Assembly: GCF_006345805.1 (NCBI RefSeq)
Contig: NW_021835220.1
Coordinates: forward strand, 1-44,389
Length of the DNA: 44,389 bases
Source of the DNA: Octopus sinensis
Taxonomy: Eukaryota
Direction of reading: 5' to 3'
Shown: positions 1-44,259 of the stretch, piece after piece
Layout: every line of letters starts with the position of its first letter
Position numbering within the stretch: the first letter of the stretch is position 1
Notes under the pieces: generated by a model
The model's database searches: none
What the model was told of the DNA's origin: nothing
What the model saw: only the letters and a program-made list of their open reading frames with translations
Position numbers and translations under genes: made by a program

Positions 1-36
1 TCTTTGATGGTTGAAATGTTGTTGTTCCAAAGATCT
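1..36 (-). CDS. LRR exon 11, truncated by window edge: DLWNNNISTIK...
   Basis: Same acceptor flank at 37-60; open frame to position 1. Confidence 0.85.
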
Positions 37-1708
37 CTATAGCAGTAAAGAAAGAGTAAAATAGATTATATGGAAAATATTTGTGATACAACATCAAACA
101 CTGTGACTTGAGAATGAAAGGAAGAAAAAGAAGAAAGATAACGAAGAAGAAAAGGAAGAAGAAGAAGGAAGAGGAGGAGGCGAAGAAGAATTAGAAGAAG
201 AAAGGAGAAGAGGTAGAAGAAAAAGAAGAGCAAGAAGGAATAGGAGGAAAAAGGAGGAGGAGGCTGATAAAAGGGAAGAAGATGTAGGAGAAAAAGTAAA
301 AGAAGGAGAAGGAGGGGGAGGAGGAGGAGGAAGAGAATAACAAGAAGAAGAAGATAAGAATAAGAAAGACGAGGAAGAGGAGGAGGAGAAGTAGATGAAG
401 AAGTAGAAAGAAGAAAGGAGAAGAAGAAGAAGAAGGAGAAGAAGAAGAAGAAGAAGAAGAAGAAGAAGACGAAAAAGAAGGAGGATGAGGAGGGGGAGGG
501 GAAGAAGAAGAATTGCAAGAAGAAGGAAGGGAAGAACAGAAGAAGAAGACGTAGAAGAAGTTGAAGCAGGAAAAAGAAGAAGAAGATGAAGAAGAAGAAG
601 GAGGAGGAGGAGGAGAAATAGACAACAAAACAGAAGTTAAGAAGGAAAAAAGGAGGAGAGAGAAGATGTGTAAAGAAGAAGAAGAAGAAGAAGAAGGAAG
701 AGGAGGAAAAAGGAGGAGGATTAGGAGTAGAAGGGAATAATAAGTAGGAGAAGATGAAAAAGAAAAGAAGAAGTGAAGAGTGAGGAAGGAGGAGGATGAG
801 AATTACAAAAAGGAATTATAAAAAGAAAAAGAGGGTAGGAGGAGAAGTAGATGTAGAAGTAGAAAGAAGAAGAAGAATATAAGAAGAAAAAAAAGAAATA
901 GAAGAATGAGAAGAAGAAAAGAAAAAGAAGGAGGAGGAGGAAAAGAAGAAGAAGAATTAGAAGAAGAAGCAGAAGAAGAAGAAAAGGAGCAGGAGTGGAA
1001 GGGAGGAGGAGAATTACAAGAAGAAAAAGGAGGAGGAGGGGCGGAGAGGATTGGGTAGAAAAAAGAAGATGAAAAAAAGAAGTAGAAGAAGGAAGAGGAA
1101 AAAGGAGGAGGAAGATGATGATAGGGAAAAAGTAGGTGTAGAAGAAAAAGAATAAGAATAAGAAGAAGGAGGAGGAGGAGGAAGGGTAGATGAAGAAGTT
1201 GAAAGTAGAAGAAGAAGAGGAAGAAGCAGAAGAGAAGAAGAAGAAGAAGAAGAAGAAGACGGAGAAGAAAATGAAGAAAAAAGAAAAAGGAGCAGGAGAG
1301 GAGGGGGAGGAAGAGAATTACAAGAAGAAATAGGAGGAGGAGGGGCGGAGTGGAGGCGGAAGAGAATTTAAAGAAGAAAATGAAGAATAATAATAAGAAA
1401 AAAATTAAAAGAGGAAGGAGGAGGAGGACCAGGAGGAGGAGGACCAGGAGGAGGACCAGGAGGAGGAGGAGCAGGAGGAGGAGGAGAGAAAAAAAAGAAA
1501 AAGAAGAGAGAGAAGAGAAGAAGAATAAAAAAAGAAAGAAGAAGAGAAGAAGAAGATAAGTAAGAAAGAAGAAATAAATAAGAAGAATAAGAAGAAGAGG
1601 AGAGGCATAATACTAATACAAAAAGATGAAAAAGGCAGAGAAGGAGAAGTAGAATAAGAAAAAGAACAAAAAGAAGAAGGAGAAGAAGAAGAAGAAGAAG
1701 GAGAAGAA

Positions 1709-1740
<32 letters not shown>

Positions 1741-4700
1741 CATTGAAAATCATGGTGTTTAAGATGAAACTGGAAATATTTTCGAAATATCAGGAAATAA
1801 TTCAAGGATAGAAAGAAAAATTTTGGGCGAGAAGACATGGCAGAAAAATCAGGGAATTTACGGAATCAGAAATCAACATATTCAAATGCACTCATACGCA
1901 TTCTTATATTCATAGTATCAACGACGGAATGCGGTATGCACACTCACATCACACATATTCCCATTCAACCTTGTGGAAATATGGTGAGAGAGATTATTTA
2001 TTTCATATCGCTTCATTGTCACAAGAATATTAGAAAACACACGCTCACAAGAAATATATCAGCACTTTAATTGTATCAGGCCAAATATTCCAGCTTACAA
2101 GTACAGTAAGTATTTCAGGTTTACAGAAAGAATGTATGTGACTATATTTTTTGAATATATATTTTCCGCTTCCACTTCAGTTGCTCTATATATAAAGGAA
2201 CATTATATTTTTCCTATTATTTTAATTTCTCTCTCAAATTCTCTCTCTTTCTTTCACATTGTCTCGCTCTCTCATATTCTCTTTGTATCTTCCTAAATCG
2301 TGTTCATTCTACAAATTCGAATTGATTTTGTTTGGCGCAGTCTGAAATTTTTTACATTTGTGAGCTGATATATCAGCATCAATTATTACTTTCGGAAAAT
2401 AGTATCAAGAAACTGAACGAACTTACAATGTCTTTAAATTCGAAAGCGCCGTGAATGCTCCTTCTTTGATGGTTGCTATGTTGTTGGAACCAAGATATCT
2501 ATAGCAGTAAAGAAAGAGTAACATAGATTTATGGAAAATATTTGTGATACGACATCAAACACTGTGACTTCAGAATGAAAGGAAGAAAAGGCAGAAAGAT
2601 AACGAAGAAGAAAAGGAAGAAGAAGGAGGAGGAGGTGAAGAAGAAAAAGAAAAAGAAGAAGAAGAATAAGTAGAAGAAGAAAGAGAAAAAGGAGAAGAAA
2701 AGAAGGGGAGAAGTAATTAGGGAAAAAGGAGGAGGAGGATGGTAAAAGGGAAGAAGTAGTAGCGAAAAAGTAAAAGAAAGAAGGAGAGGAGAGGAGGATG
2801 ACTATAGATGAAGAAGTAGAAAGAAGAAGAAGAAGAAGGAGAGGAGAAAAGGAGAGAGGAGAGATTGGAAGAATAATTAGGAGAGATGAAAAAGAAGAAG
2901 AAGATGAAGGAGGAGAGGGATGAGAATAACAAAAAGAAGAATATAAGAAGAAGAAAGAGGAGTAGGAGGAGAAGTAAATGTTGAAGTAGAAAGTAGTAGA
3001 AGAAGAAGAAGGAGAAGAAGTATAAGAAGAAAAAAGAGTAGAAAAATGAGAAGAAGAAAAGAAAAAGGAGGAGGAGGAAAAGAAGAAGAAGAAGAAGACG
3101 CAGAAGAAGAAGAAAAAGAAGCGGGAGAGGAGGGGGAGGAGGAGAATTACAAGAAAAAAAGGAGGAGGAGGGGCGGAGAGGATAGGGAAGAAAGAAAGAA
3201 GAGGAAAAAAGAAGTAGAAGGAAGAGGAAAAGGAGGAGGAAGCAATGAAGGGGAAAAGTAGTGTAGAAGAAAATAACAAGAATAAAAGATAAGGAGGAAG
3301 GAAAGAGGAGGAGGAGTAGTTGAAAAAATTGAAAGTAGAAGAGGATGTAGGAGAAGAAGAAGAAGAAGAAATATGTAGAAGCGAGAGAAGAAGAAACAAA
3401 ATAAGGAGAAGGAGGAGAAGAAGAAGAAGAATAAGAAGACGAAGAAGGAGAAGAAGAAGAAGAAGAAGAAGAAAAACGAGCAGGAGAGGAGGGGAGGTGG
3501 AGAATTACAAGAAGAAAAATGAGGAGGAGGGGCGGAGTGGAGCGGGAGAGAATTTAAAGAAGAAAATGAAGAATAAGAAGAAGAAAGAAATTAGAAGAGG
3601 AAGAAGGAGTAGGAGGAGTAGAAAGAAGAAAAAAGAAAAAGAAGAGAAGCGAGAAAGAAGAAGAAAAAAGAAAAGAAGAAAAAAGAGAAGAAAAAGAAGG
3701 AGGAGAAGGAGCAGCAGGAGGAGAGGAAGAAGAAGGAGAAGAAGAAGAAGTAGAAGAAGAAGAAGGAGAAGGAGAAGGAGAAGAAGAAGAAGTTGAAGAA
3801 GAAGAAGAAGAAGAGGGAGGAGAAGAAGAAGAAGGAGACGAAGAAGATACATTGAAAATTATGGCGTTCAAGATGAAACTGAAAATGTTCTTAAAATAAC
3901 AGGAAATAATTCAAGGATAGAAAGAAATATTTTGGGCGAGAAAACCTGGCAGAAAATTCAGGGAATATGCGGAATCAGAAATCAACATATTCAAATGCAC
4001 TCATACACATTCTTATATTCATAGTATCAACGACGGAATGCGGTATGCACACTCACATCACACATATTCCCACTCACCCTTGTGGACATATGGTGAGAGA
4101 GATTATTTATTTCATATCGTTTCATTGTCACAAGAATATTAGAAAACACACGCTCACATGAAATATATCAGCTGTTTAATTGTATCAGGCCAAATATCCC
4201 ATCTTACAAGTACAGTAGTATTTCAGGTTTACAGATAGAATGTATGTGACTATATTATTCGAATATATATTTTCCGCTTCCACTTCAGTTGCTCTATTAC
4301 ATAAATAACGTGAAGTGAATGACAAAATTCGAAGTTGAATGATAATATCGAAACACGAAGAGAATATTGAAATAAAAATGGAGGAGGATGCAAAATATAA
4401 AATAAAGGAATAATATAGTCACATTTCACACAGAACTACACTTATATATGAACATACACATATACTTCAGCTAAAAATATTTGATGCAAACATGTAAACT
4501 CACAAACGTTACCATTTCTAATACAAATTCATATCAAAATCATTGAAATTGGGGAACAAAAATGAGTTATTGAGATGCGAATTGAAACAAAGCAACTACA
4601 ATAAAGGAACATTATATTTTTCCTATTATTTCACTTTCACTCTCAAATTCTCTCTCTTTCTTTCACATTGTCTCGCTCTCTCATATTCTCTTTGTATCTT

Positions 4701-7700
4701 CCTATGTCGTGTTCATTCTACAAATTCGAATTGATTTTGTTTGGCGCAGTCTGAAATTTTTACATTGTGAGCTGATATATCAGCATCAATTATTACTTTC
4801 GGAAAAGTATCAAGAAACTGAACGAACTTACAATGTCTTTAAATTCGAAAGCGCCGTGAATGCTCCTTCTTTGATGGTTGCTATGTTGTTGGAACCAAGA
4901 TTTCTATAGCAGTAAAGAAAGAGTAAAATAGATTATATTGAAAATATTTCTGATACGACATCAAACGCTGTGACTTCAGAATGAAAGGAAGAAAAGGCAG
5001 AAAGATAACGAAGAAGAAAAGGAAGAAGAAGAAGGAGGAGGAGGTGAAGAAGAGGAACGAAAAGAAGAAGAAGAAGAATTAGTAGAAGAAGAAGAGGAGG
5101 AGGAGGAGGATGACAAGTAGATGAAAAGTAGAAGAGAATAAAAGAAGAAGGAAGAGGAGGAAAAAGGAGGAGGAGGAGAATGATTGGAAGAATAATTAGG
5201 AGAAGATGAAAAAGAAGAAGAAGATGAAGGAGAGGAGGATGAGAATAACAAAAAGAAGGATATAAGAAGAAGAAAGAGTAGGAGGAGAATAAATGTTAAG
5301 TAAAAGTAGTAGAAGAAGAAGAAGAAGAAGAGGAGAAGAAATATAAGAAGAAAAAAAATAGTAAAAAATGAAGAAGAAAAGAAAAAGGAGGAGGAGGAAA
5401 AGAAGAAAAGAAGAACGCAGAAGAAACGCAGAAGAAGAAGACAAATAAGCGGGAGGGAGGGGGAGGAGGAAATTACAAGAAAAAAAGGAGGAGGAGGAGG
5501 CGGAGAGGATTGGGAAGAAAGAAAGAAGAGGAAAAAAGAAGTAGAAGAAGGAAGAGGAAAAAGGAGAGAAGCAATGAAGGGGAAAAGTAGGAGTAGAAGA
5601 AAATAACAATAATAAGAAGAAGAAGAGGAAAGGAGGAGAGAGTAGTTGAAAAAATTGAAAGTAGAGGGATGTAGGAGAGAAGAAGAAGAAGAAATATGTA
5701 GAAGCGAGAGAAGAAACAAAATAAGGAGAAGGAGGAGAAGAAAAGAATAATAGAAGACTAAGAAGAGAAGAAGAAGAAGAAGAATAAGAAAAACGAGCAT
5801 GATAGGAGGGGAGGTGGAGAATTACAAGAAGAAAATGATGAGGAGGGGCGGAGTGGAGCGTGAGAGAATTTAAAGAAGAAAATGAAGAATAAGAATAAGA
5901 AATAAATTAGATAGGAAGAAGGAGTAGGAGGAGTAGGAAGAAAAAAAAAGGAAAAGAAGAGAAGAAGAAGAAGTAGAAGAAGAAGGAAAAGAAGAAAAAG
6001 AAGAGAAGAAAAAGAAGGAGGAGAAGGAGCAGCAGGAGGAGAGGAAGAAGAAGGAGAAGAAGAAGAAGTAGAAGAAGAAGAAGGAGAAGGAGAAGGAGAA
6101 GAAGAAGAAGTTGAAGAAGAAGAAGAAAAGAGGGGAGAAGAAGAAGAAGAGACGAAGAAGATACATTGAAAATTATGGCGTTCAAGATGAAACTGAAAAT
6201 GTTCTTAAAATAACAGGAAATAATTCAAGGATAGAAAGAAATATTTTGGGCGAGAAAACCTGGCAGAAAATTCAGGGAATATGCGGAATCAGAAATCAAC
6301 ATATTCAAATGCACTCATACACATTCTTATATTCATAGTATCAACGACGGAATGCGGTATGCACACTCACATCACACATATTCCCACTCACCCTTGTGGA
6401 CATATGGTGAGAGAGATTATTTATTTCATATCGTTTCATTGTCACAAGAATATTAGAAAACACACGCTCACATGAAATATATCAGCTGTTTAATTGTATC
6501 AGGCCAAATATCCCATCTTACAAGTACAGTAAGTATTTCAGGTTTACAGATAGAATGTATGTGACTATATTATTCGAATATATATTTTCCGCTTCCACTT
6601 CAGTTGCTCTATTACATAAATAACGTGAAGTGAATGACAAAATTCGAAGTTGAATGATAATATCGAAACACGAAGGAGAATATTGAAATAAGAAATGGAG
6701 GAGGATGCAAAATATAAAATAAAGGAATAATATAGTCACATTTCACACACAGAACTACACTTATATATGAACATACACATATACTTCAGCTAAAAATATT
6801 TGATGCAAACATGTAAACTCACACAACGTTACCATTTCTAATACAAATTCATATCAAAACAATCATTGAATTGGGGAACAAAAATGAGTTATTGAGATGC
6901 GAATTGAAACAAAGCAACTACAATAAAGGAACATTATATTTTTCCTATTATTTCACTTTCACTCTCTCAAATTCTCTCTCTTTCTTTCACATTGTCTCGC
7001 TCTCTCATATTCTCTTTGTATCTTCCTAGTCGTGTTCATTCTACAAATTCGAATTGATTTTTTTTGGCGCAGTCCTGTCAATGTTTTTACATTTGTGAGC
7101 TGATATATCAGCATCAATTATTACTTTCGGAAAATAGTATCAAGAAACTGAACGAACTTACAATGTCTTTAAATTCGAAAGCGCCGTGAATGCTCCTTCT
7201 TTGATGGTTGCTATGTTGTTGGAACCAAGATTTCTATAGCAGTAAAGAAAGAGTAAAATAGATTATATTGAAAATATTTCTGATACGACATCAAACGCTG
7301 TGACTTCAGAATGAAAGGAAGAAAAGGCAGAAAGATAACGAAGAAGAAAAGGAAGAAGAAGAAGGAGGAGGAGGTGAAGAAGAGGAACGAAAAGAAGAAG
7401 AAGAAGAATTAGTAGAAGAAGAAGGAGGAGGAGGAGGAGGATGACAAGTAGATGAAGAAGTAGAAAGAAGAAGAAGAAGAAGGAAGAGGAGGAAAAAGGA
7501 GGAGGAGGAGAATGATGGGGAAGAATAAGTAGGAGAAGATGAAAAAGAAGAAGAAGATGAAGGAGGAGGAGGATGAGAATAACAAAAAGAAGAATATAAG
7601 AAGAAGAAAGAGGAGTAGGAGGAGAAGTAAATGTTGAAGTAGAAAGTAGTAGAAGAAGAAGAAGAAGAAGGAGAAGAAGTATAAGAAGAAAAAAAGAGTA

Positions 7701-9782
7701 GAAAAATGAGAAGAAGAAAAGAAAAAGGAGGAGGAGGAAAAGAAGAAGAAGAAGACGCAGAAGAAGACGCAGAAGAAGAAGAAAAAGAAGCGGGAGAGGA
7801 GGGGGAGGAGGAGAATTACAAGAAAAAAAGGAGGAGGAGGGGCGGAGAGGATTGGGAAGAAAGAAAGAAGAGGAAAAAAGAAGTAGAAGAAGGAAGAGGA
7901 AAAAGGAGAGGAAGCAATGAAGGGGAAAAGTAGGAGTAGAAGAAAAAGAAGAAGAATAAGAAGAAGAAGGAGGAGGAGAAGGAGGAGGAGGAGTAGTTGA
8001 AAAAATTGAAAGTAGAAGAGGATGTAGGAGAAGAAGAAGAAGAAGAAATATGTAGAAGCGAGAGAAGAAGAAACAAAATAAGGAGAAGGGAGAAAAGAAG
8101 AAGAAGAATAAGAAGACGAAGAAGAAGAAGAAGAAGAAGAAGAAGAAGAAGAAGAACAAAAACGAGAAGGAGAGGAGGGGAGGAGGAGAATTACAAGAAG
8201 AAAAATGAGGAGGAGGGGCGGAGTGGAGGGGGAGAGAATTTAAAGAAGAAAATGAAGAATAAGAAGAAGAAAGAAATTAGAAGAGGAAGAAGGAGTAGGA
8301 GGAGTAGAAGAAGAAAAAAAAGAAAAGAAGAGAAGAAGAAGAAGAAGAAGAAGGAAAAGAAGAAAAAGAAGAGAAGAAAGAGAAGGAGGTGAAGGAGCAG
8401 CAGGAGGAGAGGAAGAGAAGAAGAAGAAGAAGTAGAAGAAGAATGAGAAGGAGAAGGAGAAGAAGAGAAGTAGAAGAAGAAGAAGAAGAAGAAGAAAAGG
8501 GAGGAGAAGAAGAAGAAGAAGACGAAGAAGATACATTGAAAATTATGGCGTTCAAGATGAAACTGAAAATGTTCTTAAAATATCAGGAAATAATTCAAGG
8601 AGAGAACGAAAAATTTTGGGCGAGGAGACATGGCTGAAAAATCAGGGAATATACGGAATCAGAAATCAACATATTCAAATGCACTCATACACATTCTTAT
8701 ATTCATAGTATCAACGACGGAATGCGGTATGAACACTCACATCACACATATTCCCACTCACCTTTGTGGACATATGGTGAGAGAGATTATTTATTTCATA
8801 TCGCTTCATTGTCACAAGAATATTAGAAAACACACGCTCACAAGAAATATATCAGCTGTTTAATTGTATCAGGCCAAATATCCCAGCTTACAAGTACAGT
8901 AAGTATTTCAGGTTTACAGATAGAATGTATGTGACTATATTATTCGAATATATATTTTCCGCTTCCACTTCAGTTGCTCTATTACATAAATAACGTGAAG
9001 TGAATGACAAAATTCGAAGTTGAATGATAATATCGAAACACGAAGGAGAATATTGAAAGAAGAAATGGAGGAGGATGCAAAATATAAAATAAAGGAATAA
9101 TATAGTCACATTTCACACAGAACTACACTTATATATGAACATACACATATACTTCAGCTAAAAATATTTGATGCAAACATGTAAACTCACAAACGTTACC
9201 ATTTCTAATACAAATTCATATCAAAATCATTGAAATTGGGGAACAAAAATGAGTTATTGAGATGCGAATTGAAACAAAGCAACTACAATAAAGGAACATT
9301 ATATTTTTCCTATTATTTCACTTTCACTCTCAAATTCTCTCTCTTTCTTTCACATTGTCTCGCTCTCTCATATTCTCTTTGTATCTTCCTAAATCGTGTT
9401 CATTCTACAAATTCGAATTGATTTTGTTTGGCGCAGTCTGAAATTTTTTACATTTGTGAGCTGATATATCAGCATCAATTATTACTTTCGGAAAATAGTA
9501 TCAAGAAACTGAACGAACTTACAATGTCTTTAAATTCGAAAGCGCCGTGAATGCTCCTTCTTTGATGGTTGCTATGTTGTTGGAACCAAGATTTCTATAG
9601 CAGTAAAGAAAGAGTAAAATAGATTATATTGAAAATATTTCTGATACGACATCAAACGCTGTGACTTCAGAATGAAAGGAAGAAAAGGCAGAAAGATAAC
9701 GAAGAAGAAAAGGAAGAAGAAGAAAGAGGAGGAGGTGAAGAAGAAAAAGAAAAAGAAGAAGAAGAATAAGTAGAAGAAGAAA

Positions 9783-9815
<33 letters not shown>

Positions 9816-15800: not shown

Positions 15801-18800
15801 AAAGAAAAAGGAGAAGGAGCAGCAGGAGGAGAGGAAGAGGAAGAAGAAGAAGAAGTAGAGGAAGAAGAAGAAGGAGAAGGAGAAGAAGAAGAAGAAAGAA
15901 GAGGAGAAGAAGAAGAAGAAGAAGAGGGAGGAGAAGAAGAAGAAGACGAAGAAGATACATTGAAAATTATGGCGTTCAAGATGAAACTGAAAATGTTCTT
16001 AAAATATCAGGAAATAATTCAAGGATAGATCGATAAATATTGGGCGGGGAGACATGCCTGAAAAATCAGGGAATATACGGAATCAGAAATCAACATATTC
16101 AAATGCTCACATACGCATTCTTTTATTCATAGTATCAACGACGGAATGCGGTATGCACACTCACATCACACATATTCCCACTCACCCTTGTGGAAATATG
16201 GTGAGAGAGATTATTTATTTCATATCGCTTCATCGTCACAAGAATATTAGAAAACACACGCTTACAAGAAATATATCAGCAGTTTAATTGTATCAGGCCA
16301 AATATCCCAGCTTACAAGTACAGTAAGTATTTCAGGTTTACAGATAGAATGTATGTGACTATATTATTCGAATATATATTTTCATATTCTCTTTGTATAT
16401 TCCTAAATCGTGTTCATTCTACAAATTTGAATTAATTTTGTTTAGTTCAGTCTGAAATATTATACATTTGTTAGCTTATATATCAGCATCAATTATTACT
16501 TTCGGAAAATAGTATCAAGAAACTGAACGAACTTACAAGAAGTTTAAATTTGAAAGCCCCGTGAATGTACCTTCTGTGATGGTTGCAATGTTGTTCTCGT
16601 ACAGATATCTATAGCAGTAAAGAAAGAGTAAAATAGATTATATGGAAAATATTTGTGATACAACATCAAACACTGTGACTTGAGAATGAAAGGAAGAAAA
16701 AGAAGAAAGATAACGAAGAAGAAAAGGAAGAAGAAGGAAGAGGAGGAGGCGAAGAAGAATTAGAAGAAGAAAGGAGAAGAGGTAGAAGAAAAAGAAGAGC
16801 AAGAAGGAATAGGATGAAAAAGGAGGAGGAGGCTGATAAAAGGGAAGAAGATGTAGGAGAAAAAGTAAAAGAAGGAGAAGGAGGGGGAGTAGGAGGAGGA
16901 AGAGAATAACAAGAAGAAGAAGATAAGAATAAGAAAGACGAGGAAGAGGAGGAGGAGAAGTAGATGAAGAAGTAGAAAGAAGAAAGGAGAAGATGAAGAA
17001 GGAGAAGAAGAAGGAGAAGAAGATGAAGAAGAAGACGAAAAAGAAGGAGGATGAGAAAGGGGGAGGGGAAGAAGAAGGATTGCAAGAAGAAGGAAGGGAA
17101 GAACAAGAAGAAGAAGACGTAGAAGAAGTTGAAGCAGGAAAAAGAAGAAGATGAAGAAGAAGAAGGAGGAGGAGGAGGAGAAGGAGAAAGAGAATAACAA
17201 AAACAGAAGTTAAGAAGGAGAAGGAGGAGGAGGAGAAGATGTAGAAGAAGAAGAAGAAGAAGAAGGAAGAGGAGGAAAAAGGAGGAGGAGTAGGAGTAAG
17301 AAGGGGAGAATAAGTAGGAGAAGATGAAAAAGAAGAAGAAGATGAAGGAGGAGGAGGAGGAGGATGAGAATAACAAAAAGAAGAATATAAGAAGAAGAAA
17401 GAGGGGTAGGAGGAGAAGTAGATGTAGAAATAGAAAGAAGAAGAAGAATATAAGAAAAAAAAGAAATAGAAGAATGAGAAGAAAAGAAAAAGAAGGAGGA
17501 GGAGGAAAAGAAGAAGAAGAATTAGAAGAAGAAGCAGAAGAAGAAGAAAAGGAGCAGGAGTGGAAGGGAGGATGAGAATTACCAGAAGAAAAAGGAGGAG
17601 GAGGGGCGGAGAGGATTGGGTAGAAAAAAGAAGATGAAAAAAAGAAGTAGAAGATGGAAGACGAAAAAGGAGGAGGAAGCGGATGATAGGGAAAAAGTAG
17701 GTGTAGAAGAAAAAGAATAAGAATAAGAATAAGAAGAAGGAGGAGGAGGAGGAAGGGTAGATGAAGAAGTTGAAAGTAGAAGAAGAAGAAGAAGAGGAAG
17801 AAGAAGACGAAGAAGAAGAAGAAGAAGAAGAAGAAGAAGAAGAAGAAGAAGAAGACGGAGAAGAAAAAGAAGAAAAAAGAAAAAGGAGCAGGAGAGGAGG
17901 GGGAGGAAGAGAATTACAAGAAGAAATAGGAGGAGGAGGGGCGGAGTGGAGGGGGAAGAGAATTTAAAGAAGAAAATGAAGAATAATAAGAAGAAAATAT
18001 TAGAAGAGGAAGGAGGAGGAGGACCAGGAGGAGGAGCAGAAATAGAAGAAAAAGAAAAGAAGAGAAGAAGAAGAAGAAGAAGAAGAAGATGAAGTAGAAG
18101 TGGAAGAAACAAGAAGAAGAAGAAGAAGAAGAAGGAGGAGGAGGAGGCAGAAGCCGAAATGACAAAAAGATGATGAAAAAGGCAGAGGAGGAGAAGTAGA
18201 ATAAGAAAAAGAACAAAAGAGAAGAAGGAGAAGAAGAGAAGAAGAAGAAGAAGAAGAAGAAGAAGAAGAAGAAGAAGAGAAGAAGAAACGAAGAAGAAGA
18301 CACATTGAAAATCTGTGGTTTTAAGATGAACTGAAAATATTTTCGAAATATCAGGAAATAATTCAAGGATAGAATGAAAAATTTTGGGCGAGAAGACATG
18401 GCTGAAAAATCAGGGATTATACGGAATCAGAAATCAACATATTCAAATGCACTCATACGCATTCTTATATTCATAGTATCAACGACGGAATGCGGTATGC
18501 ACACTCACATCACACATATTCCCACTCACCCTTGGGGAATATGGTGAGAGAGATTATTTTTTTCATATCGCTTCATTGTCACAAGAATATTAGAAAACAC
18601 ACGCTTACAAGAAATATATCAGCAGTTTAATTGTATCAGGCCAAATATTCCACCTTACAAGTACATAAGTATTTCAGGTTTACGGAAAGAATGTATGTGA
18701 CTATATTTTTTGAATATATATTTTCCGCTTCCACTTCAGTTGCTCTCTTACATAAATAAAGTGAAGTGAATGACAAAATTCGAATTTGAATGATAATATC

Positions 18801-21800
18801 GAAACACGAAGGAGAATATTGAAATAAGAAATGGAGGAGGATGCAAAATATAAAATAAAGGAATAATATAGTCACATTTCACACAGAACTACACTTATAT
18901 ATGAACATACACATATACTTCAGCTAAAAATATTTGATGCAAACATGTAAACTCACAAACGTTACTATTTCTAATACAAATTCATATCAAAATCATTGAA
19001 ATTTGGGGAACAAAAATGAGTTATTAAGATGCGAATTGAAACAAAGCAACTATAATAAAGGAACATTATATTCTTCCTGTTATTTCACTTTCTCTCTCAA
19101 ATTCTCTCTCTTTCTTTCACATTGTCTCGCTCTCTCATATTCTCTTTGTATATTCCTAAATCGTGTTCATTCTACAAATTTGAATTAATTTTGTTTAGTT
19201 CAGTCTGAAATATTATACATTTGTGAGCTTATATATCAGCATCAATTATTACTTTCGGAAAATAGTATCAAGAAACTGAACGAACTTACAATGTCTTTAA
19301 ATTTGAAAGCCCCGTAAATGCACCTTCTGTGATGGTTGAAATGTTGTTCTCGTTCAGATTTCTATAGCAGTAAAGAAAGAGTAAAATAGATTATATGGAA
19401 AATATTTGTGATACAACATCAAACACTGTGACTTGAGAATGAAAGGAAGAAAAAGAAGAAAGATAACGAAGAAGAAAAGGAAGAAGAAGAAGGAAGAGGA
19501 GGAGGCGAAGAAGAATTAGAAGAAGAAAGGAGAAGAGGTAGAAGAAAAAGAAGAGCAAGAAGGAATAGGAGGAAAAAGGAGGAGGAGGCTGATAAAAGGG
19601 AAGAAGATGTAGGAGAAAAAGTAAAAGAAGAAGAAGGAGGGGGAGGAGGAGGAGGAAGAGAATAACAAGAAGAAGAAGATAAGAATAAGAAAGACGAGGA
19701 AGAGGAGGAGGAGAAGTAGAAAGAAGAAAGGAGAAGAAGAAGAAGGAGAAGAAGAGGAGAAGAAGAAGAAGAAGAAGAAAAAGAAGGAGGATAGGGAGGG
19801 GGAGGGGAAGAAGAAGAATTGCAAGAAGAAGGAAGGGAAGAACAAGAAGAAGAAGACGTAGAAGAAGTTGAAGCAGGAAAATGAAGAAGATAAGAAGAAG
19901 GAGGAGGAGGAGGAGGAGGAGAAAGAGAATAACAAAAACAGAAGTTAAGAAGGAGAAGGAGGAGGAGGCGGAGATGTAGAAGAAGAAGAAGAAGAAGAAG
20001 AAGAAGGAAGAGGAGGAAAAAGGAGGAGGAGTAGGAGTATGAAGGGGAGAATAAGTAGGAGAAGATGAAAAAGAAGAAGAAGATGAAGGAGGAGGAGGAG
20101 GAGGAGGATGAGAATAACAAAAAGAAGAATATAAGAAGAAGAAAGAGGGGTAGGAGGAGAAGTAGATAAAGAAGTAGAAAGAAGAAGAAGAATATAAGAA
20201 GAAAAAAAAGAAATAGAAGAATGAGAAGAAGAAAAGAAAAAGAAGGAGGAGGAGGAAAAGAAGAAGAAGAATTAGAAGAAGAAGCAGAAGAAGAAAAAAG
20301 GAGCAGGAATGGAAGGGAGGAGGAGAATTAGAAGAAGAAAGAGGAGGAGGAGGGGCGGAGAGGATTGGGTAGAAAAAAAGAAGATGAAAAAAAGAAGTAG
20401 AAGAAGGAAGAGGAAAAAGGAGGAGGAAGATGATGATAGGGAAAAAGTAGGTGTAGAAGAAAAAGAATAAGAATAAGAATAAGAAGAAGGAGGAGGAGGA
20501 GGAAGGGTAGATGAAGAAGTTGAAAGTAGAAGAAGAAGAAGAAGAAGAAGACGAAGAAGAAGAAGACGAAGAAGAAAAAGAAGAAAAAAGAAAAAGGAGC
20601 AGGAGAGGAGGGGGAGGAAGAGAATTACAAGAAGAAATAGGAGGAGGAGGGGCGGAGTGGAGGGGGAAGAGAATTTAAAGAAGAAAATGAAGAATAATAA
20701 TAAGAAAAATATTAGAAGAGGAAGGAGGAGGAGGACCAGGAGGAGGAGGAGGACCAGGAGGAGGAGGAGGACCAGGAGGAGGAGGAGAAATAGAAGAAAA
20801 AGAAAAGAAGAGAAGAAGAAGAAGAAGAAGAAGATGAAGTAGAAGTGGAAGAAAGAAAAGAAGAAGAAGAAGAAGAAGGAGGAGGAGGCAGAAGACGAAA
20901 TGACAAAAAGATGATGAAAAAGGCAGAGAAGGAGAAGTAGAATAAGAAAAAGAACAAAGAAGAAAAAGAAAAGAAGAAGAAGAAGAAGAAGAAGAAGAAG
21001 AAGAAGAAGAAGAAGAAGAAGACGAAGAAGAAGACACATTGAAAATCATGGTGTTTAAGATGAAACTGAAAATATTTTCGAAATATCAGGAAATAATTCA
21101 AGGATAGAAAGAAAAATTTTGGGCGGAAAGACATGGCTGAAAAATCAGGGAATATACGGAATCAGAAATCAACATATTCAATTGCACTCATACGCATTCT
21201 TATATTCATAGTATAAACGACGGAATGCGGTATGCACACTTACATCACACATATTCCCACTCACCCTTGTGGAAATATGGTGAGAGAGATTATTTATTTC
21301 ATATCGCTTCAATGTCACAAGAATATTAGAAAACACACGCTTACAAGAAATATATCAGCAGTTTAATTGTATCAGGCGAAATATCCCAGCTTACAAGTAC
21401 AGTAAGTATTTCAGGTTTACAGATAGAATGTATGTTACTATATTATTCGAATATATATTTTCCGCTTCCACTTCAGTTGCTCTATTACATAAATAACGTG
21501 AAGTGAATGACAAAATTCGAATTTGAATGATAATATCGAAACACGAAGGAGAATATTGAAATAAGAAATGGAGGAGGATGCAAAATATAAAATAAGGGAA
21601 TAATATAGTCACATTTCACACAGAACTACACTTATATATGAACATACACATATACTTCAGCTAAAAATATTTGATGCAAACATGTAAACTCACAAACGTT
21701 ACCATTTCTAATACAAATTCATATCAAAATCATTGAAATTTGGGGAATAAAAATGATTTATTTAGATGCGAAGTGAATCAAAGCAACTACAATAAAGGAA

Positions 21801-24800
21801 CATTATATTTTTCCCATTATTTCACTTTCTCCCCAAATTCTCTCTCTTTCTTTCACATTGTCTCAATCTCTCATATTCTCTTTGTATCTTCCTAAATCGT
21901 GTTCATTCTACAAATTTGAATTGATTTTGTTTGGTGCAGTCTGAAATTTTATACATTTGTGAGCTTATATATCAGCATCAATTATTACTTTCGGAAAATA
22001 GTATCAAGAAACTGAACGAACTTACAATACGTTTAAATTTGAAAGCCCCGTGATGGTTGCAATGTTGTTCCCTCCAAGATCTCTATAGCAGTAAAGAAAG
22101 AGTAAAATAGATTATATGGAAAATATTTGTGATACAACATCAAACACTGTGACTTGAGAATGAAAGGAAGAAAAAGAAGAAAGATAACGAAGAAGAAAAG
22201 GAAGAAGAAGAAGGAAGAGGAGGAGGCGAAGAAGAATTAGAAGAAGAAAGGAGAAGAGGTAGAAGAAAAAGAAGAGCAAGAAGGAATAGAAGGAAAAAGG
22301 AGGAGGAGGCTGATAAAAGGGAAGAAGATGAAGGAGAAAAAGTAAAAGAAGGAGAAGGAGGGGGTGGAGGAGGAAGAGAATAACAAGAAGAAGAAGATAA
22401 GAATAAGAAAGACGAGGAAGAGGAGGAGGAGAAGTAGATGAAGAAGTAGAAAGAAGAAAGGAGGAGAAAAAGAAGAAGGAGAAGAAGAAGAAGAAGATGA
22501 AGAAGAAGACGAAAAAGAAGGAGGATGAGGAGGGGGAGGGGAAGAAGAAGAATTGCAAGAAGAAGGAAGGGAAGAACAAGAAGAAGAAGACGTAGAAGAA
22601 GTTGAAGCAGGAAAAAGAAGAAGATGAAGAAGAAGAAGGAGGAGGAGGAGGAGGAGGAGAAGGAGAAAGAGAATAACAAAAACAGAAGTTAAGAAGGAGA
22701 AGGAGGAGGAGGAGAAGATGTAGAAGAAGAAGAAGAAGAAGAAGGAAGAGGAGGAGTAGGAGTAAGAAGGGGAGAATAAGTAGGAGAAGATGAAAAAGAA
22801 GAAGAAGATGAAGGAGGAGGAGGAGGAGGATGAGAATAACAAAAAGAAGAATATAAGAAGAAAGAGGGGTAGGAGGAGAAGTAGATGTAGAAGTAGAAAG
22901 AAGAAGAATATAAGAAGAAAAAAAAGAAATAGAAGAATGAGAAGAAGAAAAGAAAAAGAAGGAGGAGGAGGAAAAGAAGAAGAAGAATTAGAAGAAGAAG
23001 CAGAAGAAGAAGAAAAGGAGCAGGAGTGGAAGGGAGGAGGAGAATTACAAGAAGAAAAAGGAGGAGGAGGGGCGGAGAGGATTGGGTAGAAAAAAGAAGA
23101 TGAAAAAAAGAAGTAGAAGAAGGAAGAGGAAAAAGGAGGAGGAAGAGGATGATAGGGAAAAAGTAGGTGTAGAAGAAAAAGAATAAGAATAAGAATAAGA
23201 AGAAGGAGGAGGAGGAGGAAGGGTAGATGAAGAAGTTGAAAGTAGAAGAAGAAGAAGAAGAGGAAGAAGAAGAAGACGAAGAAGAAGAAGACGAGAAGAG
23301 AAGAAGAAGAAGAAGACGAAGAAGAAAAAGAAGAAAAAAGAAAATGGAGCAGGAGAGGAGGGGAGGAAGAGAATTACAAGAAGAAATAGTAGGAGGGGCG
23401 GAGTGGAGGGGGAAGAGAATTTAAAGAAGAAAATGAAGAATAATAAGAAGAAAAAAATTAGAAGAGGAAGGAGGAGGAGGACCAGGAGGAGGAGGAGCAG
23501 GATGAGGAGGAGGAGAAATAGAAGAAAAAGAAAAGAAGAGAAGAAGAAGAAGAAGAAGATGAAATAGAAGTGGAAGGAAGAAAGAAGAAAGAAGAAGAAG
23601 AAGAAGAAGAAGGAGGAGGAGGCAGAAGACGAAATGACAAAAAGATGATGAAAAAGGCAGAGAAGGAGAAGTAGAATAAGAAAAAGAACAAAAGAAGAAG
23701 GAGAAGAAGAAGAAGAAGAAGAAGAAGAAGAAGAAGAAGAAGAAGAAGAAGAAGAAGACGAAGAAGAAGACACATTGAAAATCATGGTGTTTAAGATGAA
23801 ACTGAAAATATTTTCGAAATATCAGGAAATAATTCAAGGATAGAATGAAAAATTTTGGGCGAGAAGACATGGCAGAAAAATCAGGGAATATACGGAATCA
23901 GAAATCAACATATTCAATTGCACTCATACGCATTCTTATATTCATAGTATCAACGACGGAATGCGGTATGCACACTCACATCACACATATTCCCACTCAC
24001 CCTTGGGGAAATATGGTGAGAGAGATTATTTATTTCATATCGCTTCATTGTCACAAGAATATTAGAAAACACACGCTTACAAGAAATATATCAGCAGTTT
24101 AATTGTATCAGGCCAAATATTCCAGCTTACAAGTACAGTAAGTATTTCAGGTTTACAGATAGAATGTATGTGACTATATTTTTTGAATATATATTTTCCG
24201 CTTCCACTTCAGTTGCTCTATTACATAAATAACGTGAAGTGAATGACAAAATTCGAAGTTGTGTGATAATATCGAAACACGAAGGAGAATATTGAAATAA
24301 GAAATGGAGGAGGATGTAAAATATAAAATAAAGGAATAATATAGTCACATTTCACACAGAACTACACTTATATATGAACACACACATATACTTCAGCTAA
24401 AAATATTTGATGCAAACATGTAAACTCACAAACGTTACCATTTCTAATACAAATTCATATCAAAATCATTGAAATTTGGGGAACAAAAATGAGTTATTGA
24501 GATGCGAATTGAAACAAAGCAACTACAATAAAGGAACATTATATTTTTCCTATTATTTCATTTTCTCTCTCAAATTCTCTCTCTTTCTTTCACATTGTCT
24601 CGCTCTCTCATATTCTCTTTGTATATTCCTAAATCGTGTTCATTCTACAAATTTGAATTAATTTTGTTTAGTTCAGTCTGAAATTTTATACATTTGTGAG
24701 CTTATATATCAGCATCAATTATTACTTTCGGAAAATAGTATCAAGAAACTGAACGAACTTACAATGTCTTTAAATTCGAAAGCCCCGTGAATGCTCCTTC

Positions 24801-27800
24801 TTTGATGGTTGAAATGTTGTTCCCTCGCAGATCTCTATAGCAGTAAAGAAAGAGTAAAATAGATTATTTGGAAAGTATTTGTGATACGATATCAAACACT
24901 GTGACTTCAGAATGAAAGGAAGAAAAAGAAGAAAGATAACGAAGAAGAAAAAGAAGAAGAAGAAGAAGAAGAAGAAGAAGAAGAAGAAGAAGAAGAAGAA
25001 GAAGAAGAAGAAGAAGAAGAAGAAGAAGAAGAAGAAGCAGAAGGAGAAGAAGAAGAAGCAGGAGGAGAAGAATATCTTAACGTGGCAGCCGTTTCATGTT
25101 TATTTCCTACTTGACTTGCACAACCTCGAGTATCCGCTTCGCCTCTCTATGTACCAACACACACATCCACACACATACACGCACATGTATGCACATATAA
25201 GCACATACACACATATACACTCAGAAATATACACACATATGTATATCTACCTCTGGGTGCGAGTATGTGTGTGAACCTCGTCCCCGTAGTGGTGTCCTTT
25301 TATCTGTCGATACAGTTTATTATCGAATCTAAAGGTGTTGTCTTCTAGTTCCCGGCGTGTGTCTTTGGAAATGCGTTTTGAAGCGTTCGTCCATCCGTCC
25401 GCTATGTTTTTCTACCCAGTGTTTGATTGCTCCCAGGCCCAAAGTGTGATGTATTTGTACAAAGATTAGTCAAATCTTTTAAGTATAGTACGTTCTGGGA
25501 CAGTGGGTGGAATGTGTTTGATGAAATCCATATCGTCTCGGGTATAGCTGGGCATTAATGGGCACAACGGTTTGAGGAGTATATCCAAAAGATGGCTCAG
25601 TTGTTGTGTTGGGGCTCAAGGTCCAGCAACTGTTGGTCTCAATTTGATGTCAGTAGGTCTTAGTATTTTTATATGCTGATCCTTGCATTTTGGAGCATTC
25701 GCAGATCTTGGGTGATCCATAGAAATTACTCTCTTTCATTACAGAGCTGCATAAATAATCTTTCTCTTTATCTGTGAACGAACGTTGGTATTCATTTATC
25801 TTAATTTTGGGTGTATTTATTATTACTTTCTCCGCGTGTCTTGGTTCTTTCTTGTAGCAGGATTAGTCTGTTTCCAATATTTTATCTTTATAGTAGTCTT
25901 GGTCCGTGACTGCTATCACCCTTCCCCAATCGGTTTCGTTTAGGATGATTAAATTGTCAATTTGCAGTTTGTAAGGCTTTCTTTTCGTCTTCACGAAGGC
26001 TCTGTTTGCATTTTCGTATATTTTATTATATAAGATATAAAACAGATTTAAATCACCACGTAAAGTATGAATGAAAAACACACATGCATGTAAAATATGA
26101 GAAAAGAATGGATGTTCAAAATATTTGTGATTTGAATTAGATTTACAAAGCCTTCGTTGCAACATCAGTTTTCAGTGGAAGATATTTTTATCATCTCAGA
26201 AGTCAGCTTTATTTAGAAATATCTTGTTTCTGTCCAATGAGCATTCTATTTGTTATTACACTTTGCTGTCAAAAGTAATTTATCTTTGCAAAAGTAAACT
26301 CCTCTCCTTTGCATAATTAATGCATAAAAGTTCTTCACAAAAATAAATAAACCCCCAAAACTTCAAGACTGAAATAATAGACTAGGAAGGAAAACATAAC
26401 AGAAATAGAAAGGGATTTATTAATAGAATTGGTGATGGTAGAGTGGGGAAACCCTGATATAATTTTGAGTTATGTGCTACAAAGGAGAACAACCTTACAT
26501 GGTGATTTAACTGGTTAAGGGTGTTATTTAAAAAAGGGATGTGGCAACATACATTGCCTTAGGTTTTTTCGTCTTTTTTTAGCCCTTTGCTCCTTACTCT
26601 TGCTGTATTAAACCTCAGTTTGTTCCCATTATTAGCCATCTATGCTAAATCCTTCATCCCCTAAATAGCATCCCTGTTAATCATTCCTGTAAAGGTTAAC
26701 CTGCAACAGCTCAAACGGAATATTAATGACTAACAGTATCGCCCGGCATTGCTCAGGTTTGTAAGGGAAATAACTATAAAGCATTTTTAGAGAGTTATAG
26801 CCAAAAAATAGCAAAAAAATGGAAAAAAAATGATGGTAAATTTTTTTGAGAGTTAAAAAAGGTGGAGTTGCGTCCCCTAGACGGTCTGTGGTTTGGGTTT
26901 CTGATTCTCGACCCCATGTCGAATTTATCGATTTTTTTCAGAACTGGGGGAACTTTTCAAAATTTTCGCTGCGTTAGTTTTGAATTATGACATTGGGCTA
27001 TGTGTGTGTCAAGTTTCATCAGAATCGGTTGAAAGCCGTGGTCAGAGTGAGGGTACGAGAAAACAGACACACAGAAAACGCACAGACAAACTGCCGTTTA
27101 TATAGAGAGAGATATCTGTCTCACAAATATTGGAGATCTTGCAGGGGTTAAAAAACTTGTCTGATCCTTTCTCCAAAATCGCTAAAATAAAAAGTGTGGA
27201 ATTTTAACTCAGGTCACAGACAACTGGACAATATACTGCAAGGTGTCTTATTCGAGGTCCTCATAGTTGCATTTGTTCATTGAACAGTTATGGTTCTTTA
27301 TTGATCTCTGAAATGAATGACCCAAGGTTGACCTTGGCGGGATTTGACGTCAGATTGCCGTGTGTCAGAACGCAATGTATTCTACTAGACGGTCAAATGA
27401 TTTGTGCCAAACCTCGCTCAAGTTATGAACGATGAAAATATCTAACTTATTAAACAGAACTTCAACTTTACTATTCAACATCTTGAGTTATACGAGATTT
27501 AGGAATTCCATTATTGACACTTTTCTCTTTATTTTACATTAGGATTTCTCATTTTGTCAAAACGTTCCAAATGTTTTGAGAAATAGATCTGATCGAATGA
27601 ATTGATCCACTTTAGTATTAGAATATTTGATTAAAACTGAAAGTTTAAGGTGATTAATGCAATGATGCAAGCCAATTAACTGGAAATAATCACCTGGAAG
27701 AGCAGTGTGTTGCAACAGAGTATTTGTTATGATTGCATGTATCAAATAATTTCTCTTTTTTATTCTATTCCATTTCTTGAGACGTTAAATTTTAATAATT

Positions 27801-28930: not shown

Positions 28931-29485
28931 ATTGCCAGGCGTAGATTTATCTGTAAAAGAAGAAAATAGGAAATGTCAGAGATTTCAATGTTATTAACTT
29001 CAAATTGCAGATTCTCTGAAGGAACTAAAATTCACCCCTGTTCCACATGACAAATATATTTTTGTTTTCATGATTGGATATTTAAAGCTAAAAAATTAAA
29101 TTTCGATAAATTAGTGTGAAGAAATTTATAAAAATATTATAGCTTTAACGCGTAATAATATCAAAGAAAACACCAAACTCACACACACAAACACAAACGC
29201 ACTCCTACACACATCTGTAACCATACTCGGAGGGGGGTCTAATATATATATATATACAAAACTAGCGAACCATGAGTTTCGTAGACCCTAAATACGCAGT
29301 GGTTGTAAACCCGGTTGGGTCGTTAAATCCGATGGGACCCCACAAGCAACTGTATTGTATCAAAGGATTTTTCCTGTACCCCAGTTTTAGAAGCGTTCAT
29401 ACAAAGTTTTTCCTTAAATAAACTATCATGATTTCATTTTACTTACTTTTTTTTTACTGAAAACAAGAATAAAGCATGAACGTAA

Positions 29486-30426
29486 ATCTATATATATAAA
29501 ACTCAACTTGTGTGTCTATCTGTGTATCTGTGTGTGTGTCTGTGTCTTTTACTTCCCGGCACATCTCCTCCTAGCCAACAAATCGTAGAACCACCAAACA
29601 TGGGTCACTTAAAGTTTAGGCGAATGAAAATTGAACTGCGCTATTTCTGTTCCGAAATTCATCTCGCAAGTGCAGAAATCGATAATGTGTTTGTTTAGGC
29701 CTTCTCCCATGCATTGAATAGTGAACTTTACTCAGTCAGCTGTTTGACGTGAACTGTGTTCACCACGCGTGCAAGCATGCGTAAATTGCATGAAAAATAA
29801 AAAAGCAAGACGAATCGCCGTAAACATTGTAGAAATTCGGCAAAGAAATGAATTTTCGGGATGTAGCCTGGAGGGTTTTTCCCTATTAATCGTTTGGACT
29901 TTGTGAACTCATACCAATTGTTTTCATACCATTTTTAACGCTTTGAATTAAATGTGACCATTTTGCGTTGAGTCTGCAGTTTGAATCACTAACCAAATTT
30001 TAGCAGGCAGGATTTTTGATCATCACGATACATCGCCAGCGACTCCCTGAAACTCTCCTCTGATATCCTCGTTGAGAAATACTGATCTAAAAGAATAATT
30101 CAACAATGCAATTTTCTGTATGTTATATGTGTTTGTAAATCCTGGTGTTTTTGTTATGTATTTGTCTGAATAATTTTTTATCATGCCTAATGCACTTACT
30201 ATGATAGGAATTGTTTCTGTTTTTAGATTCCTCGTTCGAGTTACCTCTATTTCCAGGTCTTTGTATTTTGAAAGTTTCTCCATTTCTTTATTGTTATTAT
30301 TATTATTTGTGTCGGTTTTGGAGACTAGTTGTTCGGAGCTCTAAGTTTTCTTTAGAATTTGTTGTTACAATGTTGTTTTCAAAATTTTATTGACCACAGA
30401 ACCCACCTCGCTGTAAGCGGGGCTAG
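29486..30426 (+). mobile_element. Possible second Helitron-type non-autonomous element, interrupted by a LINE fragment
   Basis: Starts ATCTATATATATAAAA plus (TG)-rich stretch; candidate 3' hairpin ctcgctgtaagcggg followed by CTAG at 30423-30426. The linkage of the two ends is inferred. Confidence 0.4.
30105..30289 (-). mobile_element. Dong/R4-like non-LTR retrotransposon fragment (restriction-like endonuclease region)
   Basis: EKLSKYKDLEIEVTR..LKTETIPIIVSALG; close paralog of 43808-43990; short (TAA)n at its 5' junction (about 30290-30307). Confidence 0.8.
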
Positions 30427-30559
30427 CTGCGGTGGCCAGAATTCGCCCCTTAAAGGCGAATTTTGAGTTTTAAAAACTACAAATTTATATTTTATAAAGA
30501 AAAAGTTCAGTCTGGCTTCCCAAATCGAGGCAAGTAAAGGTTCTTACATCATCCGTTTT

Positions 30560-31410: not shown

Positions 31411-31474
31411 ACTTTCCCAAATGCATCAATAAATTAACATTGATATTTTTTCACCGTTGTTGCAATCATCTGAA

Positions 31475-32567: not shown

Positions 32568-32577
32568 TTTATTTCCA

Positions 32578-32803: not shown

Positions 32804-32806
32804 TAG

Positions 32807-43520: not shown

Positions 43521-44259
<739 letters not shown>

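Follow-up and report, generated by a model that had tools for sequence, protein, structure and literature searches.

In the ROCO (LRR-ROC-COR) genes of brown algae each leucine-rich repeat (LRR) is encoded by one 72-bp phase-2 exon, and these exons lie in tandem and undergo 'exon shuffling' (Zambounis et al. 2012, as cited in PMC11378527; PMC11378527, 2024); the 2024 study places four positively selected sites on the concave beta-sheet and reports splice variants with different sets of cassettes (PMC11378527). Here we analyse a stretch of 44,389 nucleotides (nt) from Octopus sinensis (RefSeq assembly GCF_006345805.1, contig NW_021835220.1, positions 1 to 44,389; hereafter the window). Its minus strand carries the 5' part of a gene of the Octopus vulgaris/sinensis group – the gene runs on past position 1 – with a tandem array of 11 LRR cassette exons. 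The ROCO genes are the closest analogue of this array: common to both are tandem, 72-nt, phase-2, single-LRR exons that are interchangeable in frame, an arrangement found in the window and in other loci of O. sinensis, O. vulgaris and O. bimaculoides. The likeness is one of analogy and not homology. ROCO proteins are cytoplasmic GTPases from another kingdom, whereas the octopus product is predicted to be an ectodomain, secreted or membrane-bound, that is capped by LRRNT and LRRCT; ROC-COR GTPase domains are absent from its paralogues, which continue into LRRCT, Ly6/uPAR-like and SEA-like parts. Further differences are that the octopus arrays interleave two classes of cassette, with conserved flanks peculiar to each class, and carry a kilobase pyrimidine tract before every acceptor. 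The data reported below make it probable that germline diversifying selection acts on the beta-strand (concave) face of the cassette-encoded LRR array, in combination with concerted evolution of the introns.

Other described systems share some of these features. One LRR per phase-2 exon of 72–75 bp is the layout of the LGR/glycoprotein-hormone receptor genes (Koo et al. 1991, as quoted in PMC11378527), and the solved LRR domains closest to the window protein include those of LGR4 and LGR5. Only the layout is shared: the LGR and gonadotropin-receptor exons are old, conserved and non-interchangeable, with no young tandem array and no hypervariable face. Jawless-fish VLRs resemble the octopus product in their order of N-terminal signal peptide, LRRNT, 24-residue LRRs and LRRCT, and in the placing of diversity at x positions assigned to the concave face; hagfish VLR-A is among the sequence matches of the window protein. 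VLR cassettes, however, are donor segments that cannot be spliced and are copied into an incomplete gene in somatic cells, whereas the octopus cassettes are ordinary germline exons, in frame and with AG/GT sites, and the hallmark of somatic assembly is not seen in the germline sequence. In plant LRR resistance genes and receptor-like proteins (e.g. the Cf-4/Cf-9 clusters) the exposed residues of xxLxLxx are hypervariable and sequence is exchanged between tandem copies; there the repeats lie mostly within large exons and whole genes are exchanged, whereas in the octopus the unit of exchange is the single-repeat exon. At the MHC, selection maintains exon diversity while recombination homogenises the flanking introns: the octopus array shares this pairing of homogenised introns with diversified exons, although MHC diversity is allelic and not between tandem exons of one gene. 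Dscam1 and the clustered protocadherins likewise combine tandem variable exons with many receptor isoforms, but Dscam1 uses its variable exons in a mutually exclusive manner and the protocadherins select theirs by promoter, whereas the octopus isoform models use several cassettes in series and differ by skipping. No existing description of octopus LRR cassette exons was found in the literature searched.

The array occupies the first 25 kb of the window, with a unit length of 2.1–2.75 kb, and long GAA-like tracts make its plus strand strongly purine-rich. The coding exon with the ATG (28740–28930, minus strand; ATG at 28930) encodes a signal peptide, a putative LRRNT cysteine cap (DICNTCNCNSLTTRIYC) and the first part of LRR1, and ends ...GAA TAT TT|gtaagt, giving a phase 2 intron. 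Joined to the 11 cassettes it forms a single open reading frame (ORF) of 310 residues with a split TT|A leucine codon at every junction; cassette exons begin with the third base of that codon, so that all introns are phase 2. The product of each cassette is a single repeat of 24 residues with the pattern x-L-x-x-N-N-I-(A/S)-T-I-x-E-G-x-F-T-(G/A)-L-S-N-L-x-x-(L). The repeats conform to the typical extracellular LRR pattern LxxLxLxxNxIxxIxxxxFxxLxxL. All on the minus strand, and in gene order, the cassettes are exon 1 at 24763–24834 (DLRGNNISTIKEGAFTGLSNLKT, 72 nt), exon 2 at 22026–22082 (DLGGNNIATI-----TGLSNLNV, 57 nt), exon 3 at 19290–19361 (NLNENNISTITEGAFTGLSNLKT), exon 4 at 16537–16608 (YLYENNIATITEGTFTGLSNLNF), exon 5 at 14448–14519 (YLGSNNIATIKEGAFTALSNLKT; same sequence as exon 10), exon 6 at 11934–12005 (YLYENNIATITEGTFTGLSNLNY), exon 7 at 9523–9594 (NLGSNNIATIKEGAFTALSNLKT; same sequence as exons 8 and 9), exon 8 at 7162–7233 (NLGS...KT), exon 9 at 4832–4903 (NLGS...KT), exon 10 at 2427–2498 (YLGS...KT) and exon 11 at 1–36 (DLWNNNISTIK..., cut by the window edge). 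Every one has AG...GT borders and an open frame. A preliminary description of this DNA had aligned the 11 exons as one series; all 11 are present, but only nine are of 72 nt, one being of 57 nt and the edge exon partial, and the full-length cassettes comprise just six distinct sequences. The 57-nt cassette lacks K-E-G-A-F through a 15-nt in-frame deletion bounded by short TCA microhomology, which leaves a 19-residue repeat where the structural model is less confident; this cassette may be defective. Since the cassettes are 72 nt long and in phase 2, any subset of them splices in frame.

Variability within the array is concentrated at a few codons of the repeat. With ten units aligned without their simple-repeat tract, the mean pairwise difference was 0.145 for the whole exon, 0.039 for the intron on the acceptor side and 0.043 for the intron on the donor side. 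Segregating sites, taken from the nine full exons, occupy 11 of the 15 nt in the five x codons (codons 1, 3, 4, 22 and 23; mean pairwise difference 0.389), 9 of 57 nt in the rest of the exon (0.073) and 111 of 1077 nt of intron (0.044). The x codons thus stand apart from the rest of the exon (Fisher test, P = 4e-5) and from the intron (P = 2e-8), while no difference in segregating-site density was detected in the window between the rest of the exon and the intron (P = 0.19). Re-alignment of the window exons bore out every codon listed in the preliminary description for these five positions, as well as its statements that codons 2, 7, 13, 15 and 19 change only synonymously and that codons 8, 11, 14 and 17 are dimorphic. 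Its designation of all five x positions as hypervariable applies to codons 1, 3, 4 and 23; codon 22 is just K/N, with variability no greater than that of codons 8, 11 and 14. Cassettes that are otherwise identical differ by one-step variants (N or Y at codon 1, Y or F at codon 23), indicating that change at these sites is still arising.

The same excess is found across the family. Twenty-six full exons of the window's type (class A) were assembled from the window, a second O. sinensis locus (L001) and two O. vulgaris loci (L002 and L003), each located by its acceptor flank, blind to coding content. Codons 1, 3, 4 and 23 have summed nucleotide diversities of 0.94, 2.01, 1.82 and 1.55, against 0.75 for codon 22 and at most 0.71 for any other codon; in the 150-nt flanks of these exons diversity averages 0.07–0.10 per site. 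Parsimony reconstruction on a neighbour-joining tree built from flanks and framework sites yields, per replacement site, 5.4 replacement changes at codon 1, 7.9 at codon 3, 10.7 at codon 4 and 8.7 at codon 23, compared with 2.07 per site for exon-wide synonymous changes and 0.75 for the intron. Codon 22, at 1.5, reaches about 0.7 of the synonymous rate, and codons 8, 11 and 14 are mildly raised. Counts that need no tree agree. At first and second positions of the four codons each site must have changed at least 2.62 times on average, which is 4.3 times the minimum for synonymous-type sites (framework third positions, 0.61) and 6.5 times that for the intron (0.40). Three or four bases are present at seven of these eight positions (Fisher P = 4e-4 against framework third positions, 5.5e-8 against intron). 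Neither the window's framework nucleotides as a whole (P = 0.19) nor family-wide third positions (P = 0.21) differed from intron, and no general exon-wide mutator is therefore claimed. Nei–Gojobori estimates are 0.55–0.77 for nonsynonymous divergence (dN) in the x codons and 0.20–0.22 for synonymous divergence (dS) in the framework, where dN/dS is 0.23–0.37. Replacement in excess of the neutral rate, as had been proposed for five codons, is therefore found by these counting methods at codons 1, 3, 4 and 23, but not at codon 22.

An independent class of cassette shows the same pattern. Class B cassettes (NKISRIEKEMFQGLHNLEK; x-L-x-x-N-K-I-S-R-I-E-K-E-M-F-Q-G-L-H-N-L-E-x) have their own conserved acceptor and donor flanks and are interleaved with class A in L001 (12934–31738), there being none among the 11 cassettes of the window; their entropy also peaks at positions 1, 3, 4 and 23. 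A relative in O. bimaculoides (L004, 218–289 and 10499–10570) has 72-nt phase-2 LRR exons too. Its donor flank resembles that of class A (gtaagttNgttaaa...ttgata), although acceptor flank and framework residues differ; 29% of this locus consists of N.

The variable codons lie on or beside the predicted principal strand of the repeat. Pfam LRR_8 matches the 310-residue product in seven stretches (E = 5e-96), and PDB sequence matches include LRRC15, ALS, TLR3, LGR4 and VLR. A single-sequence AlphaFold2 model of the spliced product has a mean predicted local distance difference test score (pLDDT) of 75.7, with values of about 75–93 over most of the LRR part, and its closest folds by Foldseek are LRIG1, LINGO-1, NGL-3, chondroadherin, the Nogo receptor and LGR4. 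DSSP assigns codon 23, Leu24, codon 1 and Leu2 of the model to the main strand in every repeat; codons 3 and 4 follow directly after the strand, and codon 22 lies just before it. In LRR geometry the non-leucine residues of the strand point to the concave surface. Of the variable sites that had been placed on that surface, codons 23 and 1 thus lie within the predicted strand and codons 3 and 4 adjoin it, whereas codon 22 falls before it. Beside this face, the A/S dimorphism of codon 8 (codons 6–8, e.g. 24811–24819, minus strand) toggles an N-I-S glycosylation sequon (NNISTI versus NNIATI), and some dimorphic sites may alter the glycan cover next to the binding surface.

Exons and introns of the array have separate histories. 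Thirteen unit pairs, some of them between loci and between species, have flanks that diverge by 2% or less, and their exons are either identical or 9–13 of 72 nt apart (12–18%); exons that are not identical differ by 7–10% at non-x positions. Pooled over the 13 pairs, the flanks diverge by 1.3%, the four codons by 39% and what remains of the exon (60 nt) by 6.4%. The cassettes at 19290–19361 (NLNE...KT) and 11934–12005 (YLYE...NY), for example, differ at 1 of 300 flank positions and at 9 of 72 exon positions. Pairs of sites that fail the four-gamete test are frequent throughout (20 of 66 in the exon, 97 of 518 and 29 of 105 in the flanks), and the cassette at 24763–24834 looks mosaic, its 5' half being from one type and its 3' half from another. 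This pattern points to homogenised introns and to older exon types that would have been kept and reshuffled, and not only to quick substitution following duplication. The contrast between exon and intron had been attributed to diversification of the x codons; that the four codons exceed the exon's own synonymous-type sites agrees with this, but the 13 pairs show that much of the contrast comes from the decoupled histories. Turnover of the array itself appears fast. The 5' gene module (window 24909–36012) is colinear with L001 1–10697 and with L002 8819–14069, at 94.5–97% identity; despite these matching modules the cassette arrays of the window, L001 and L002 share no identical exon, which points to recent gene duplication with very rapid turnover of the arrays.

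Several considerations count against diversifying selection on the concave face. Within the x codons alone the Nei–Gojobori dN/dS is only about 1.0–1.2; since multi-nucleotide differences are split between pathways and saturate, this ratio is uninformative, and other yardsticks were used. Those yardsticks come from counting methods applied to 26 short, recombining sequences, and the parsimony tree was built from the same flank and framework sites that serve as its yardstick, so that their rates are biased downward. The concave-face orientation rests on strand assignment together with textbook LRR geometry, and the gene is represented here by genomic sequence, of its 5' part. The isoforms discussed below are computational models of paralogues, some of them with odd chimeric repeats. 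Finally, the proportion of synonymous differences (pS) in the framework of the window exons is 0.175, well above the intron diversity of 0.044, and part of the exon excess therefore reflects older ancestry of the exons and not faster substitution.

The alternative that survives best takes this last point further: the exon types would be ancient, the introns homogenised, and the x differences simply old and preserved, with no positive selection needed. The decoupling of exon and flank histories is what it predicts, as are exon differences that are bimodal at 0 or 9–13 nt, the excess of non-x exon sites over flanks in close-flank pairs, the high framework pS and the mosaicism that is met everywhere. 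Age, however, is common to all sites of an exon, and the four codons exceed synonymous-type sites of the same exons about fourfold, with at least three states at seven of their eight first and second positions; framework codons are at the same time under purifying selection, and the one-step variants at codons 1 and 23 show that change continues. We therefore regard ancient exon types combined with intron homogenisation as unlikely to be the whole explanation.

Less probable still is relaxed constraint, by which the x positions drift freely while framework and splice flanks are held. The x positions of LRRs tolerate any residue, and flanks and framework are clearly constrained here. The 30 nt on either side of the exon have a nucleotide diversity (pi) of 0.040, as against 0.098 at 31–150 nt (26 units, permutation P = 0.001); in the window, the probability of finding no variable site in 50 nt at the density of the intron is 0.004; and in a paralogue from another assembly six units carry the 22-nt acceptor flank without a single difference. 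The 26-nt donor flank and the 22-nt acceptor flank recur, as first described, in 10 and 11 exact copies that bracket the minus-strand exons. The intron as a whole is not invariant: identity covers 23 nt upstream and 25–26 nt downstream of the exon, whereas deeper intron differs by about 4% between units. It follows that the adjacent flanks, which had been set against the x codons, are constrained and hence not a neutral comparator, although the x codons exceed the intron as well. Purifying selection on these flanks is probably exerted for splicing signals. A conserved RNA structure behind their invariance (exon-flank pairing, or a selector-type hairpin) was considered and rejected, folding of two units giving z = -1.0 and +2.2 relative to shuffled sequences. 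What relaxed constraint fails to accommodate is the magnitude of change, because drift cannot exceed the neutral rate: the x codons differ by 39%, compared with 4.4% in the intron beyond the first 30 nt next to the exon and with about 18–22% at framework synonymous sites, and the tree-free minimum counts exceed both the synonymous-type and the intronic yardstick. With four of five codons above the neutral yardsticks, relaxed constraint alone is insufficient.

A targeted mutational or templated process at the exon ends – germline hypermutation, micro-conversion from a donor pool, or somatic change as in VLR and immunoglobulin genes – was the second cause offered in the preliminary description, and is in our judgement very improbable. 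Multi-nucleotide differences do fall in patches of 12 and 6 nt at the exon ends, beside invariant intron; the patches RG, GS and YE recur in other paralogues, as templated exchange would produce, and the exons are mosaic. Yet every variant is an intact, spliceable germline exon, mosaicism is not greater in the exons than in the flanks, and no donor library lacking splice sites was seen. Moreover, the Leu2 codon within the patches changes only synonymously, and a mutator would not spare Leu2 without selection. Of the two causes first offered, germline selection is thus the better reading at codons 1, 3, 4 and 23, and the targeted process is unsupported. An artefact of assembly or polishing can scarcely be credited: tandem 2.4-kb units with long (GAA)n tracts are difficult to assemble, but independent assemblies of O. 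sinensis and O. vulgaris show the same architecture, flanks and position-specific variability, O. bimaculoides has the 72-nt phase-2 layout as well, open frame and AG/GT sites are kept in every cassette, and collapse or over-polishing would have homogenised the exons along with the introns.

Under germline diversifying selection with concerted intron evolution, the array would expand and contract through whole-unit duplication and unequal crossing-over, which accounts for runs of identical neighbours such as the three NLGS cassettes in a row. Recombination and gene conversion would hold the long introns alike, with purifying selection additionally keeping some 25–30 nt at each splice site. The exons, by this mechanism, would last as a pool of older discrete variants that differ mainly at codons 23 and 1, in the strand, and at codons 3 and 4, which directly follow it. 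These variants would be kept and reshuffled since arrays with differing binding faces are favoured, and replacement changes at the four residues would themselves be favoured. The result would be a germline-encoded set of LRR ectodomains with differing binding faces, which cassette skipping may enlarge.

The gene appears to be a member of an Octopus-restricted multigene family, some members of which would continue into a GAIN/GPS region. Its best protein matches all come from O. sinensis and O. vulgaris (63–71% identity), with signal peptide and LRRNT almost identical, and relatives of the non-LRR part are found in three Octopus species only. The family layout comprises signal peptide, LRRNT, a varying count of 24-residue LRRs, LRRCT, a cysteine domain of Ly6/uPAR-like type and a SEA-like region. 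The cysteine domain ends in CC-x3-LCN, which we take to be the Ly6/uPAR-type signature; one relative bears the name 'ly6/PLAUR domain-containing' in its source record. In one paralogue (P0140) GAIN is matched weakly (E = 0.0021, below the cut-off). The GPS motif PF01825 is found in a related model from O. vulgaris, and several paralogues are annotated 'adhesion GPCR G6-like' (GPCR, G-protein-coupled receptor). No seven-transmembrane (7TM) domain is present in any retrieved model, and a search with the GAIN-like tail of P0140 returned short Octopus models only, one of them with a GPS. An octopus-specific expansion of adhesion GPCRs ('group 3') has been described in which 5 of 22 sequences contain LRRs, expression is seen in axial nerve cord, suckers and skin, and there are signs of positive selection (Ritschard et al. 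2019, PMC6408891). That group resembles the present family in being Octopus-restricted, in its tandem clusters, in having LRRs in some members and in its signs of positive selection, and we infer that the window gene may belong to it. The portions of PMC6408891 available to us treat the 7TM genes as whole units and make no mention of cassette exons, position-specific variability or splicing.

Isoform sets annotated for paralogues in RefSeq and ENA suggest that cassettes are skipped. RefSeq lists 13 isoforms of the L001 gene, of 409, 385, 361 and 337 residues, and another O. sinensis paralogue has isoforms of 525, 501 and 477 residues; the O. vulgaris models mostly differ in 24-residue steps as well. 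The L001 isoforms vary in inclusion of the first cassettes, and isoform models hold five to eight cassettes in series. Judged from these models, cassette skipping by alternative splicing is likely but unproven. One L001 cassette (11131–11203) is 73 nt long and frameshifted, and isoforms X2, X4, X7, X8 and X13 contain chimeric repeats in which the 5' half of this cassette is joined to the 3' half of a later one; these are either model artefacts or the product of internal splice-site use.

The ten cassette introns (37–24762, minus strand; 2017–2681 nt each) share one order in gene orientation: the 26-nt donor flank, 0.57–0.99 kb of unique sequence that is about 96% alike between units, 1.2–1.7 kb of pyrimidine-rich (TTC-like) tract, and 72–74 nt ending in the acceptor flank. 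In plus-strand coordinates the tracts lie at 117–1746, 2579–3848, 4984–6163, 7314–8533, 9675–10944, 12086–13755, 14600–15959, 16689–18298, 19442–21031 and 22163–23772. Such a tract (110–2510 nt, about 91% pyrimidine, TTC-like on the transcribed strand) is present in all cassette introns of the window, L001, L002 and L003, and its length explains most variation in unit length. Its end is fixed, at 68–74 nt before class A acceptors and 99–104 nt before class B acceptors. The tract may act as a giant polypyrimidine silencer of splicing or as a (GAA.TTC)n hotspot for recombination.

Intron 1 (24835–28739, minus strand) carries the 22-nt acceptor flank at 24835–24856 and a short pyrimidine-rich tract (GAA-like on the plus strand) at 24915–25074. 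Family members in O. vulgaris and O. sinensis begin with almost the same peptide as that encoded by exon 28740–28930; in this peptide a hydrophobic N-terminus and an LRRNT-type motif, C-x2-C-x-C-x9-C, are visible, although the only Pfam LRRNT match is weak and in a paralogue (P0001; E = 0.0097, below the cut-off), and the cap region of the model is of low confidence. An AG acceptor lies at about 28951 (minus strand), 20 nt upstream of the ATG, and N-terminal extensions of paralogues (...N/Y-KSTPGN-MFHH) read through it; an additional upstream 5' exon and an alternative start probably exist. Upstream of the gene are decayed remnants of mobile elements (31433–32347 and 33677–34677 on the plus strand, 43765–44211 and 30026–30340 on the minus strand). 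They include a mariner-type transposase fragment (Pfam Transposase_1, E = 5e-5), a zinc-finger ORF of Spin-doc type and an ORF (...EMEKLSKYKDLEIEVTR...) in two copies that has no Pfam match. Those at 30–35 kb fall inside the part colinear with L001, and many microsatellites – (AT)n, (CA)n and (ATT)n – are present.

Expansions of protocadherins, zinc-finger genes and GPCRs figure prominently in papers on cephalopod genomes, where they are put forward as potential origins of neural and sensory novelty. The locus described here adds modular diversity within one octopus-restricted family: interchangeable one-repeat exons, probable selection on four presumably ligand-facing residues, quick turnover of entire arrays between loci elsewhere 96–97% identical, and probable skipping of cassettes. 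It provides, independently and in an animal, a counterpart of the ROCO cassettes of brown algae, and it is a clean natural case of exon diversity maintained within homogenised introns. We suggest, tentatively and as the less probable outcome, that these paralogues with interchangeable hypervariable LRR cassettes form an octopus-specific receptor-diversity system, in which cassettes would be skipped, in a regulated or stochastic manner, per cell or tissue on adhesion-GPCR-like or Ly6-linked receptors; the pyrimidine tract, which precedes class A acceptors by about 72 nt and class B acceptors by about 100 nt, could take part in the skipping. Were this so, the family would be an LRR counterpart of Dscam1 and the clustered protocadherins, or a splicing-based counterpart of VLRs, and could serve chemotactile sensing by suckers and skin, neural self-recognition or immunity. 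If cassette skipping proves to be regulated, the system could be a true mechanism of receptor diversity in the octopus. The family is a concrete, testable candidate for a repertoire of recognition receptors in a large-brained invertebrate without known adaptive immunity.

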